From Salisapilia sapeloensis CBS 127946 (taxonomy: Eukaryota > Protista > Oomycota): a stretch of DNA of 64,000 nucleotides. Below, in pieces: positions 9,386 through 13,203 of this stretch. The DNA lies in assembly GCA_023334545.1 (NCBI GenBank), contig JAADVB010000012.1, forward strand, positions 62,001 to 126,000. The letters are read 5' to 3'. How positions within the stretch are numbered: position 1 is the stretch's first letter; the number at the start of each line of letters is the position of its first letter. The translations under genes were made by a program, and so were the position numbers. The notes beneath the pieces were generated by a model. It made no database searches, had not been told where the DNA came from, and saw only the letters and a list, made by a program, of their open reading frames with translations.

Positions 9386-9483
9386 GCATTTTAATATCCC
9401 CAAGACGGATAACTAAGAAATCTAATATGAAGTCTTATGACATTGCAACCATCGCGTTTCTTGATGTTATCACTTTACGCTAT

Positions 9484-11195
9484 CTACGCTTCCAGTTGTA
9501 GACGAGCCTTGGCTTCAATGTCAGTCAGGACAGTCGATAGAGGGATGTCTTGTTCAGAAGCAATGACCTAGAAAGATATGAACATGAGTACTTGTGAATA
9601 GTAGAAGAGAGATAGGATTGAGTACCTTGCAGTGCTCGTACTCGGGGCGAACGTTCACGACCTGAGAGCCATAGGCCGCTACCTTCACGTCCACAGAGCG
9701 ACCAAAGGCTTCGACACGAATGAATCGTCTCGACAAGTACGCTCGTTGCATGTCACGCCTAGTACGAAGAACTCTATCATTGAAAAAGCTATAGCGATCA
9801 TATAATAAGTTTGTACCTGCGGATGCCAAGTGTTGTTGTCTCTGTAAAGAGCACTTCCAAGACCTCTTCTTCCCACTTTGGCAAGCACATAATACTATAC
9901 ACCATGTCAATCATTGCGTCCAAGGTCCTATCTACTGTCGATACGTACTTGAGGCATGTTGATGGGCGGGACTTCTTCATGTGAATTGGCTGGGACCACA
10001 CGTCCAGAGCAATCTTACGCTCCAGTAGCCTTTCAGACAGATACCCGATGACCTGTGGATTCATATCGTCGATATTGGTCTCCAAGACAACGACAGCCTC
10101 TACGTCATACGGCAGAGCAGAGTGCTTCGACACTGAAAGAAGTTCTCCAACAGCCACTCGGACGATGTTGGCATGGTTCGGAAACTCTTTCGTGCCAGCG
10201 CCGACGCCAGTCATCTTTGGCGTGAATGCCGGTGGCTCGCCAAAGGACTCAGCTAAGGCTTTTACAAGACTGATTCCTGTTGGTGTCACGAGCTCTCCTG
10301 TTGCTCTACTCTTTAAAGTAAGTATGAATGAAAAGTTCAAGTTACCACGAACACGTACCCTTTAGGAGCAGGACACACTGGCACGTCAATCATCAGTCGA
10401 AAGGTAGCTGGAGGTGGAACTGGAAGCTCTCCATGTGCACATTTGACAGTTCCAGAGGAAAAGGGCAAATAGGAAGAACAGACTTGGCGGACACCTAGCA
10501 AGTCGAGAGCAAGCACACTACCGACGGTATCGATGATACTGTCGATGGCACCGACTTCATGGAAGTGGACACTTTCCACCTCGGCACCATGCGTATGCGC
10601 CTCTGCCTGTGCAAGCAGATGGAAGACCTTTAGACTCATCGTTTTCGCCCAGTCTGATAACGAACTGCTGTTCACAAGACGCTGGATGTCGGTGAAGTTG
10701 CGCATCGGTTCATGATGGTCATGGGAGTGACTGTGGCCATGCCCATGATCATGATCATGGCTATGGTCAGCTACAGGAGGCTGATCCTTCTCCTCTTCCG
10801 AGACTCCGGAATGCTCTTGATGAGAGTGGTTATGCTCATGGGAGTGACTATGATCATGAGAATGGCTATGATCGTGGGCATGGTTATGCTCGGTGTTTTT
10901 CGCAGTGGGCGGCGCAGCAGCTTTATGATTATACACAGAAGAAACTTGTGCCTTTGTGGCAGCAATGCTTCCAGGTCCTTTCCACACACGAGTAGTTGTC
11001 AAGTCCCATTCGCCTCGAATCTCTTCCATCGACTCCAATCCACGCTTGATCTCGTCTAAAGGAGCACCCTATCACCAAGACGACTCAATTTTCCACCATA
11101 ACGTTGCATTGATGGCATTATAGTACAGCATCAATTAATGCACCAAGGAGCATATCCCCAGCCACACCGGCGGAGCAATCGAGGAAGGCGAGCAT
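9484..11195 (-). CDS. larC: LarC-family nickel insertase (nickel-pincer nucleotide cofactor biosynthesis), 6 exons, about 476 aa
   Basis: Manual splicing 11195-11127, 11068-10359, 10305-9949, 9894-9817, 9758-9626, 9567-9484 gives a 1431-nt open frame; motifs LDCSAGVAGDMLLGALIDAG, His-rich tract, VHFHEVGAIDSIID, CAHGELPVPPPAT, GELVTPTG, ETNIDDMNPQ, MKKSRP, ETTTLGIR, RPEYEHC. Confidence 0.93.
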
Positions 11196-11295
11196 CTCGC
11201 CACGTACTTGAATCAGCAGTCGGTACCTTTAAATATAATAATCGGTACCTGTACCACAAATAAAAGGCTGGAATTGTGCCAAAACGCGGAACGGA

Positions 11296-13203
11296 ATGGA
11301 CCTTGATCGTCAAACACGGGGCCATGCGCTCACGGGCATGACGTCGCCGCCTGAGTTGGCTCGATGCATGAACTTCCCGAGCGGAGACGTCGCTCATTTC
11401 GCCGTCCAGGATTATGCCCTTTACTACGACAAACGTGTGAAATTAGGTTCTCGAGGTGGTAAAGCACGCAAGCTCCTGTGCACGTCGTCGGTGCCCTGTC
11501 CATTCTTCGTCCAGCTCTGTACTCGTCGCGGCCGTAAGAGTGAAGGCTGGTACGTGTCTTCTCTCAACCTGACGCATTCCCCCGAATGTGACTCCAAGCC
11601 ACAACCGACCCAGCGACAATTGGAGCAAATGCCCATGTTCATCGAGGCACTGCGTAAGAGTCCAATTCGAAATGCCAAGGATCTCATGCGCTTCGTCCCG
11701 GAGAAGACTAGTCTACGCATGATCTATCGAGCTCGAAACGCTCTACGGGATCGACTGCGTGGTGAATTAAGTACAGCCTATAGTAAAATCCCAGCCTTCA
11801 TCCAGTCGTATCAAGAGTCGAATCCTGGCTCCTTTACCAAGTACGAAGTGGATGACCACGGCGCATTCTCTAGAGCTTTCATATCCTGTGCACCTATCAT
11901 TGCCTCCATGAGTGCCAATCAACAGATCCTAGGTCTCGACACCGTGGGTGCTCGAGACGCTGAAGCAGAGTACGGTGGTACGCACTTATATCTTTTTGGT
12001 AAAGACGGGAATCGAGCGACTTTGATACTCGCTGCAGCCGTGTGTGACATGCCGTCCCAAGATAACTATCGTTGGTTCTTGGAAATGGCACAACAAGCTG
12101 GACTGGACATCCACTCTCGACCGATCATTTGTGCTTTAGACGGAACATTATTGGCGTTGGAGTCGCAGATGAACCTCACCTTTCGCATGTGCACTAAGTA
12201 CATTATTGAGTCAGGACTGACGCAAGGGAATGCGATTGATGTACGCCACACGCCTCTTGTGTATGGGCTCCAAGAGTCCGAGACGCCAGCAGAGTTTTCC
12301 CATCGACTCTCGTGGCTGCGTAAAGTGTGTGGCGATAACGTTGCGGACTACTTGGAAAAGATTCCCATCCACCGATGGACAGTTGGTGGTAATCTCCATA
12401 CGCTCGCCTTGTATGGGAACTGCACGCGTCGATTGGAATCGACGGAGACGAGTAACATGGATGCGAAGCCATCGGATAGATTGTCGACGATTATCTCTGA
12501 ATTGTCTACAAAGCTCCCGTATGATTTCCTTGAACGGATCATTATGGTGTTTATGGAAGACTTGTATCAACGTAGTAAACAAGCGAGTGAGTGGATATTG
12601 GAAGGTCGGAAGCTTGTGCCTGGTGCACAAGTACTTTATGACAAAGAGTTTCGACAACAAGGCAATTACGAAATCACGAGTGCCTCGGAAACGATTGTAT
12701 TTGCATCTAAATTGAAAGATACGAGTGCTCGTCGTCGACGTGTCGACTTGCGCAATCACACGTGCACTTGTCCGTTCATGGATCAGCACTCGATCCCATG
12801 TCGACATCTACTTGCAGCGCTTCTCTACTCGCATCAACCAGGAACAGCATATGAAAGTTTTGCGTCGTGCTACTTGGTCGAAAGCTTCGCAAGTGCGTTC
12901 CAAGGCAAGTCACTTGAACTGCCTTTGGACACGAACTTACCGTTGGATGAATCGTGCAGTCGAGCCGAGAGTTCGATCCATCCATTAGGACCCAAACGTG
13001 GTCGTAAGTCCAAGAAGCGTTCGGCTACGGAATTAAATGACTTGTTAGATGCTTCTGGCATAAACACGGAGCCTGTAGAAGAAGAGAGTGGAACGGATGG
13101 AGAGAAGAAAGCGCCGCGTGCGTGCAAAACGTGTGGCCATCCAGGCCATAATCGACGCACGTGTCCGAATACGCTCACGGCCTTGCGATCTGCGTTGCTT
13201 TAA
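11296..13203 (+). CDS. MULE/Mutator transposase-derived protein with SWIM zinc finger and CCHC knuckle, probably domesticated
   Basis: Intact intronless 635-aa ORF; MuDR/FAR1-like Zn DNA-binding region (CPFFVQL...WYVSSLNLTHSPEC), MULE core (LGLD...GKDGN...LAAAV...YRWFL), SWIM CTCPFMDQHSIPCRHL, knuckle CKTCGHPGHNRRTC; no TIRs seen. Confidence 0.85.
   Translation: MDLDRQTRGHALTGMTSPPELARCMNFPSGDVAHFAVQDYALYYDKRVKLGSRGGKARKLLCTSSVPCPFFVQLCTRRGRKSEGWYVSSLNLTHSPECDSKPQPTQRQLEQMPMFIEALRKSPIRNAKDLMRFVPEKTSLRMIYRARNALRDRLRGELSTAYSKIPAFIQSYQESNPGSFTKYEVDDHGAFSRAFISCAPIIASMSANQQILGLDTVGARDAEAEYGGTHLYLFGKDGNRATLILAAAVCDMPSQDNYRWFLEMAQQAGLDIHSRPIICALDGTLLALESQMNLTFRMCTKYIIESGLTQGNAIDVRHTPLVYGLQESETPAEFSHRLSWLRKVCGDNVADYLEKIPIHRWTVGGNLHTLALYGNCTRRLESTETSNMDAKPSDRLSTIISELSTKLPYDFLERIIMVFMEDLYQRSKQASEWILEGRKLVPGAQVLYDKEFRQQGNYEITSASETIVFASKLKDTSARRRRVDLRNHTCTCPFMDQHSIPCRHLLAALLYSHQPGTAYESFASCYLVESFASAFQGKSLELPLDTNLPLDESCSRAESSIHPLGPKRGRKSKKRSATELNDLLDASGINTEPVEEESGTDGEKKAPRACKTCGHPGHNRRTCPNTLTALRSALL

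Follow-up and report, generated by a model that had tools for sequence, protein, structure and literature searches.

A gene on the minus strand of the window (the whole 64,000-nucleotide stretch of DNA analysed) is very probably a functional nuclear LarC gene of a peronosporomycete oomycete, with a LarA-type enzyme as its client. LarC inserts Ni into P2TMN in a CTP-dependent reaction to give the nickel-pincer nucleotide (NPN), the cofactor of LarA-family racemases and epimerases; its enzyme name is pyridinium-3,5-bisthiocarboxylic acid mononucleotide nickel insertase. Evidence was obtained on the structure, transcription and splicing of the gene, on family membership and conservation of experimentally tested residues, on purifying selection and on an ancient eukaryotic ancestry.

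Transcript and exon structure of larC

The larC coding sequence (CDS) runs on the minus strand from an ATG at 11195, which begins the protein MLAFLDCSAGVAGDM, to a TAG stop with its last base at 9484, and consists of six exons and five introns. RNA evidence was drawn from public assemblies of four runs, two from organism A (X1 and X3), with contigs 100% identical to the window, and two from the related organism B (X5 and X6), with contigs of >90% identity; depths in these assemblies are contig word depths, which indicate presence and not expression level. With the introns set by the assembled RNA contigs, the spliced CDS is 1431 nt long and encodes a protein of 476 amino acids. The introns measure, in transcript order, 58, 53, 54, 58 and 58 nt, and each is GT..AG on the minus strand. 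The features of the transcript, all on the minus strand, are as follows.

11196..11209, minus strand, 5′ UTR, minimum extent (end of RNA contig X3 record 4 at 11209)
11127..11195, minus strand, exon 1, residues 1-23 (MLAFLDCSAGVAGDMLLGALIDA) (PF01969 positions 2-21; PDB 12bi alignment)
11069..11126, minus strand, intron 1, 58 nt, GT..AG, phase 0 (joint 11067>11126, cut +1, in X1, X3 and X5)
10359..11068, minus strand, exon 2, bulk of the LarC1 domain (PF01969, 5.1e-42; TIGR00299, 132.9 bits; 12bi, 8.4e-30)
10712..10888, minus strand, His-rich tract, H84 to H142, inside LarC1 (23 of 59 residues His)
10306..10358, minus strand, intron 2, 53 nt, GT..AG, phase 2 (joint 10305>10359 in four of four runs)
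9949..10305, minus strand, exon 3, end of LarC1, interdomain linker and start of LarC2 (PF01969 positions 184-291; LarC1 and LarC2 models; 12bi, 6bwo)
9895..9948, minus strand, intron 3, 54 nt, phase 2 (joint 9894>9949 in four of four runs)
9817..9894, minus strand, exon 4, 26 LarC2 codons (…EVLFTETTTLGIR) (PF01969 positions 293-317; NF052512 positions 49-73)
9759..9816, minus strand, intron 4, 58 nt, phase 2 (joint 9757>9816, cut +1, in X1, X3 and X6)
9626..9758, minus strand, exon 5, C-terminal part of LarC2 including RPEYEHC (PF01969 positions 317-361; NF052512 positions 74-118)
9568..9625, minus strand, intron 5, 58 nt, phase 0 (joint 9565>9624, cut +2, in X1 and X3)
9484..9567, minus strand, exon 6, last 27 codons and TAG stop (CDS model)
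9442..9483, minus strand, 3′ UTR, ~40 nt (RNA contig ends at 9442 and 9444)

All five junctions were present in RNA contigs from the two related organisms, with intron 5 taking the form of a 59-nt variant in organism B (X5 and X6). An RNA contig of 1487 nt runs from 11209 to 9442 and bounds the 5′ UTR at a length of at least 14 nt. Upstream of the ATG, the frame-0 translation contained no in-frame ATG between the stop at 11229-11231 and position 11195.

These data bear directly on the original prediction, which had been made from the sequence alone. It had described the open reading frame list as fragmentary, and the six-frame list over 9484-11195 does hold fragments only, those on the minus strand being pieces of a single protein. 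The five GT-AG introns of 53 to 58 nt and the protein of ~476 amino acids that it had proposed were matched exactly by the RNA contigs, and the motifs it had quoted, the N-terminal DCSAGVAGDMLLGAL and the C-terminal RPEYEHC, were located at residues 6-20 and 441-447, respectively. It had also named the five junctions as the point to be checked in RNA; five of five are carried by the contigs, and the gene is transcribed. A different splice model derived from sequence only used incorrect acceptors for introns 2 and 4, making them 50 and 43 nt long and the product 482 or 481 amino acids, and was overruled by the RNA contigs.

Family membership and comparison with bacterial LarC

The exon pieces matched the PF01969 (Ni_insertion) profile in order, at positions 2-21, 22-177, 184-291, 293-317 and 317-361, with E values down to 5e-42, which rules out a chance match; this collinearity also provides an independent check of the splice model. 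Scores of the exon pieces were 144.8, 123.7, 28.4 and 24.6 bits (cut-off, 22.1), and exon 4 by itself scored 18.3 bits to the same profile; the exon 5 profile matches came from a slightly longer piece, 9626-9772. The NCBIfam model for LarC1, TIGR00299, gave 132.9 bits on exon 2 (cut-off, 90), and that for LarC2, NF052512, gave 58.9 bits on exon 3 (cut-off, 50) and continued collinearly over exons 4 and 5. The two models together define a protein with LarC1 followed by LarC2 in one polypeptide. Among solved structures, the Moorella thermoacetica LarC chain (PDB 12bi), which we take to be the only solved full-length relative, aligned with exon 2 (E value, 8.4e-30) and with exon 3 across the LarC1/LarC2 junction (1.3e-17), and 6bwo, a crystal chain of Lactiplantibacillus plantarum LarC2, aligned with the start of LarC2 (1.8e-05). 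A PDB search with exon 5 alone returned no match.

Conservation was assessed by aligning the window LarC with 115 diverse homologues; of the 59 columns with a conservation of 90% or more, it keeps 59. The conserved LarC2 columns kept include N337, D339, D340, M369, K370, K371, R373, R404, R410, R415, K430 and E444, the CTP-binding LarC2 domain being judged here by family-wide column conservation and not by individual published CTP contacts. For LarC1, a 2026 cryo-EM paper reported the LarC residues whose alanine substitution markedly cuts activity (PMC13510736). The correspondence with the Moorella enzyme is given below in native Moorella numbering, to which 18 is added in the numbering of PDB chain 12bi.

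Moorella D15, window D14
Moorella R71, window R146
Moorella E104, window E179
Moorella H108, window H183
Moorella H116, window H191
Moorella H118, window H193
Moorella E119, window E194
Moorella D124, window D199
Moorella D128, window D203
Moorella H160, window H235
Moorella E187, window E264
Moorella H226, window H304

Thus, all 12 of the compared Moorella LarC1 positions at which substitution causes a marked loss of activity are kept. Exon 1 carries D14, the counterpart of Moorella D15, and is without an N-terminal extension. R146, E179, H183, H191, H193, E194, D199, D203 and H235 are encoded by exon 2. Exon 3 encodes E264 (in GELVTPTG) and H304 in its LarC1 part, and N337, D339, D340, K370, K371 and R373 in its LarC2 part. 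Moorella H70 is replaced by M and H72 by N; the H72A substitution is harmless in the Moorella enzyme (PMC13510736). Two further replacements, N238 to L and Q241 to S, lie in the linker/cleft region, which is poorly conserved according to the same paper, and no counterpart of Moorella Y180 could be assigned. Together with the collinear PF01969, TIGR00299 and NF052512 matches and the 59 conserved columns, the 12 key residues uphold the original identification of the locus as a complete LarC.

Moorella thermoacetica LarC (PDB 12bi; PMC13510736) and the window LarC share a single-polypeptide LarC1-linker-LarC2 arrangement. The window protein is the longer of the two (476 versus ~396 amino acids in native Moorella LarC), its His-rich insertion before R146 is much longer than that in Moorella, and its gene, unlike Moorella larC, contains five introns. 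L. plantarum LarC (LarC2 structures 6bwo/6bwq) belongs to the same family and likewise has a His-rich LarC1, with 21 His, although it is encoded in two ORFs joined via programmed ribosomal frameshifting (PMC13510736). The spliced CDS of the window gene is one uninterrupted frame and does not require such a frameshift.

The window LarC contains 34 His residues, 24 of them in residues 70-150. The tract from H84 to H142 lies between V65 and R146 and consists mostly of H-x repeats. LarC1 has a conserved His-rich nickel-binding region (PMC13510736), and the tract is an expanded version of this bacterial region and a putative nickel-binding or nickel-storing part of LarC1.

Coding sequences of organisms A and B were also compared. 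Of 37 differences listed, a rough figure since there are 15 further besides, 22 were synonymous and 15 nonsynonymous, and none of these 15 nonsynonymous changes fell at a conserved column. At neutrality, approximately one in four changes would be synonymous; larC is thus under purifying selection. That larC is merely a decaying relic, still expressed but with a product that has lost its enzyme activity, is very improbable. Nothing specific speaks for this. The frame is intact across six exons, every one of the conserved columns is retained, the synonymous excess departs from neutral expectation and the gene has been kept in the Saprolegniales, Albugo, the Pythiales and the Peronosporales.

Eukaryotic residence and ancestry

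When exon 2 was searched exhaustively with HMMER, the best representative was a protein of Globisporangium splendens. Annotated oomycete orthologues were found in Globisporangium, many Phytophthora, Peronospora, Bremia, Hyaloperonospora, Peronosclerospora, Pythium insidiosum, Albugo, Aphanomyces, Achlya and Saprolegnia, and outside the oomycetes in brown algae (Ectocarpus, Scytosiphon and Choristocarpus) and Nannochloropsis. Identity to the window LarC was 55 to 61% for the Peronosporales and Globisporangium, 46 to 49% for Albugo and Aphanomyces, 43 to 47% for brown algae and ~40% for the best bacteria. The oomycete orthologues, annotated as "Nickel insertion protein" (G. splendens, G. ultimum and others), are thus 46 to 61% identical to the window LarC over the full length, and they have the His-rich insertion and intron positions in common with it. 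No oomycete orthologue was closer than ~61% full-length identity, and the window LarC branches apart from Globisporangium and from the Phytophthora/downy-mildew group, and so represents a further lineage. The novelty implied by the original prediction was not borne out, given that orthologues are annotated across the oomycetes and that use of NPN by an oomycete enzyme is in print (PMC11770544). The larC gene itself is no discovery, the pathway in unicellular eukaryotes having already been published as well.

A LarC tree of 67 rows was inferred with IQ-TREE (LG+C20 PMSF) without inference of a root. The oomycete sequences formed a clade with 100/99 support. Within it, the Saprolegniales come first and Albugo second, before an unresolved fork that comprises the window LarC, Globisporangium and the Peronosporales, in agreement with the species tree. 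A single split, also supported at 100/99, separated 26 of 26 known-eukaryotic rows from three of three known-bacterial rows in this unrooted tree, where the bacterial sampling is restricted to sequences resembling the oomycete query, taxon labels are missing from most rows and the known-eukaryotic rows include a cluster with an MMETSP transcript and four metagenome lineages assigned by the neighbor genes on their contigs. These neighbors were a cyclic-nucleotide phosphodiesterase with V-ATPase subunit a, a cNMP/EF-hand ion channel, PRP4 with a mitochondrial carrier, and a calpain. On the eukaryotic side of the split lie the oomycetes, brown algae, eustigmatophytes, a EukProt transcript, a cluster including an MMETSP transcript and the metagenome lineages; the brown-algal and eustigmatophyte LarCs, 43 to 47% identical to the window LarC, therefore fall on the same side as the window sequence. 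The nearest bacterial row that was checked has larB directly upstream of larC, on a contig with planctomycete-type genes. The tree hints at a single group of eukaryotic LarCs, and it supplies the comparison with prokaryotic and other stramenopile LarCs that had been proposed alongside the original prediction.

The exon structures of four annotated orthologues were rebuilt exactly from their genomic loci, and introns were mapped on the alignment. For introns 1 and 2, position and phase agree with those in Phytophthora, Globisporangium, Aphanomyces and Ectocarpus. Intron 3 is common to Phytophthora and Aphanomyces, and also to Globisporangium once a missed exon is restored: the G. splendens annotation is without exon 4, which was found in its 276-nt "intron" at L002:7490-7570. 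Intron 4 is common to Phytophthora, Globisporangium and Aphanomyces, while intron 5 is common to Globisporangium, Aphanomyces and Ectocarpus and absent from Phytophthora citrophthora. In Ectocarpus, introns 1 (phase 0), 2 (phase 2) and 5 (phase 0) therefore fall in the same column and phase as in the window gene, and their flanks are unambiguous (LIDA^GAP, PK(G/S)^A and E(H/D)CK^V, where ^ marks the intron), although Ectocarpus larC introns are much longer (153 to 1726 nt) and more numerous. Introns common to oomycetes and Ectocarpus indicate that a larC gene with these introns is older than the oomycete-ochrophyte split.

The genes around larC, over ~22 kb, encode a PPR protein, a mannosyltransferase, a formate-dehydrogenase (FDH)-like 2-hydroxyacid dehydrogenase, a SWIM/MULE-derived product, a C2-domain protein, a protein kinase, a kinesin and a papain-type protease. 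With introns spliced in RNA, eukaryotic flanks and intron positions common to other eukaryotes, larC is a eukaryotic nuclear gene. An origin by assembly contamination or recent horizontal transfer from a bacterium would accord with a family that is overwhelmingly prokaryotic and with bacterial homologues of up to ~40% identity. Its probability is negligible in view of the removal of five spliceosomal introns in RNA, the flanking PPR, kinesin, C2-domain, protein kinase and papain-type protease genes, the match of introns 1, 2 and 5 with those of a brown alga, an oomycete LarC tree that mirrors the species tree and the eukaryotic/bacterial split; the eukaryotic flanks, the introns common with Ectocarpus and the tree following oomycete phylogeny exclude contamination and recent transfer. 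The original argument that introns speak against bacterial contamination thus finds agreement in four lines of data: RNA splicing, neighboring genes, Ectocarpus-shared introns and the tree. The data are compatible with a possible transfer in the distant past, into an early eukaryote or an alga.

Function, client and gene neighborhood

After removal of the five short introns from the mRNA, translation would yield one continuous LarC1-LarC2 polypeptide. By homology with the bacterial enzyme (PMC13510736), LarC2 would CMPylate P2TMN with CTP. The CMPylated intermediate would then be passed on from LarC2, and Ni(II) insertion in the LarC1 pocket would give NPN; the expanded His-rich tract and the acidic pocket around E179 would take part in this insertion together with the histidine cluster. 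Neither an N-terminal targeting peptide nor a C-terminal PTS1 was identified in the window LarC. With the conserved core beginning at residue 2 and no earlier ATG in the frame, there is no place for a targeting presequence, and the enzyme is therefore predicted to be cytosolic.

The most likely client would be an oomycete GntE-type LarA homologue acting as a D-gluconate/D-mannonate 2-epimerase. This activity, dependent on NPN, was found for Phytophthora nicotianae LarAH15 after loading with NPN from an in vitro synthesis, eukaryotic LarA homologues all fall within the GntE branch, and NPN-biosynthetic genes are present in some unicellular eukaryotes (PMC11770544). The NPN pathway that the original prediction had proposed for the window organism fits this literature. 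In the literature searched, no assay of any eukaryotic LarC was reported and nothing relevant was found on LarC in stramenopiles.

The protein could also be a true LarC homologue with another role, either as a nickel store or chaperone acting through its His tract or as a source of NPN for a client other than LarA, with the recently described hydride-shuttling nickel enzyme family in view. The length of the tract (23 His in 59 residues) would suit such a store, a structurally distinct NPN-dependent enzyme family has been reported (PMC13524815) and no partner gene occurs in the scanned part of the window (~2 to 24 kb). This is nevertheless unlikely: the catalytic LarC1 pocket residues and the conserved LarC2 columns are all kept, and a mere nickel store needs neither; eukaryotes are unmentioned in the report of the new family (PMC13524815); and Phytophthora has a documented LarA-type client (PMC11770544). 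NPN synthesis for a LarA-type epimerase is accordingly the preferred reading of the locus. As to partners, the original prediction had stated that none lies in the window; this held for the ten ORFs scanned over ~2 to 24 kb, the part covered by the scan, in which no Lar family was detected.

The FDH-like gene converges on larC, and its poly(A) site at 9448, recognized by a 25-A loose end after 9448 on a plus-strand RNA contig, overlaps the larC 3′ end at 9442-9444 by a few bases. On the other side, the SWIM/MULE-derived gene is divergent to larC, their start codons being 100 nt apart, and it was detected in the RNA runs that contain larC. In one RNA assembly the larC and SWIM/MULE-derived transcripts are merged. 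Neither the FDH-like nor the SWIM/MULE-derived gene was found beside larC in Phytophthora citrophthora, Globisporangium splendens, Aphanomyces invadans or Ectocarpus. Since neither neighbor adjoins larC in these four species, a functional FDH-LarC-MULE module was considered and rejected; the gene neighborhoods of larC differ between the window and other oomycetes.

In Phytophthora citrophthora, larC is divergently paired with a PF10282 lactonase gene 339 nt away, and a P. fragariaefolia gene model fuses the LarC and PF10282 lactonase families. A lactonase-larC pairing would fit sugar-acid metabolism. No PF10282 lactonase was found in the window.

The analysis adds a transcript-verified LarC model in a further oomycete lineage and, in the shared introns, evidence for the antiquity of larC. 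Intron positions held in common and a congruent tree show that stramenopiles have passed on the nickel-insertion step of NPN synthesis by vertical descent over a very long time. It is rather likely that LarC and NPN synthesis are an ancient and widespread eukaryotic trait and not a scattered bacterial import. We know of no reported counterpart of LarC in plants or animals. LarC is an obligatory step upstream of the NPN-dependent epimerases, and NPN-dependent gluconate epimerases have been put forward as possible anti-oomycete targets (PMC11770544). Eukaryotic nickel biology is usually reduced to urease, given in a 2020 review as the only eukaryotic nickel-dependent enzyme (PMC7435645). If the trait is indeed ancient, the pathway would be no younger than the ancestor that oomycetes share with ochrophytes, and NPN-dependent sugar-acid epimerization would constitute a second eukaryotic nickel-dependent enzyme system besides urease.

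Introns and transcript ends of larC

All five larC introns (11069-11126, 10306-10358, 9895-9948, 9759-9816 and 9568-9625) began with GTAC and fell within a narrow size band of 53 to 58 nt, with a GC content of 31 to 44% compared with 52% for the CDS. A 25-A loose end on an RNA contig placed the poly(A) site of the convergent formate-dehydrogenase-like gene (+ strand) directly past 9448, and RNA contigs of the − strand larC transcript had their 3′ limits at 9442-9444; thus, the 3′ ends of the two genes overlap by a few bases (window 9442-9448). Word depth on RNA contigs, which reflects contig presence and not expression level, was 25 to 60 times that of larC for the formate-dehydrogenase-like gene.

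At its 5′ end, larC faces a second gene across 100 nt between the ATGs (window 11196-11295).

11296-13203, head-to-head with larC: SWIM-domain, MULE-derived ORF, 635 aa, PF04434

Transcripts of this ORF were found in the same RNA runs as those of larC, at similar word depth. As a single 3,544-nt contig from run X1 (an RNA assembly 100% identical to the window) spanned both transcripts, the two genes may have overlapping 5′ ends or a common bidirectional promoter. One further ORF was considered within larC itself.

10712-11059, + strand: 115-aa ORF, MMVMGVTVAMPMIMIMAM…, opposite the larC His-rich tract

This ORF was rejected as a gene: it merely mirrors the CAT/CAC-rich repeat and is an artefact.

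larC in other oomycetes

In Phytophthora citrophthora JASMQC010000002.1 (L001:4504-7797), a gene for a PF10282 seven-bladed lactonase, the start of which resembles a signal peptide, divergently adjoins larC across a 339-nt gap, and P. fragariaefolia gene model P0170 is a PF01969 and PF10282 fusion. No PF10282 lactonase was present in the window. The association may indicate a functional link with gluconate/mannonate metabolism. The deposited Globisporangium splendens model FI667_g4877 (VFIW01000014.1) lacked the 26-codon exon 4 of larC, which was found at L002:7490-7570, within an annotated 276-nt intron (L002:7381-7657).

LarC genes on metagenome contigs

Among the bacterial LarCs checked, that of contig L006 (JGI metagenome 3300062303) was nearest to the clade holding all sequences of known eukaryotic origin. 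Here, a larB-type AIRC gene lies 17 nt upstream of larC (L006:7175-9620), on a contig abundant in planctomycete-type N_methyl/SBP_bac_10 genes. LarC genes of 420 to 576 aa were also identified beside eukaryotic neighbor genes on marine/environmental contigs (L005, L007 and two more). Some of these were broken into two gene calls, which suggests that they contain introns. These contigs point to possession of LarC by unlabelled protist lineages.
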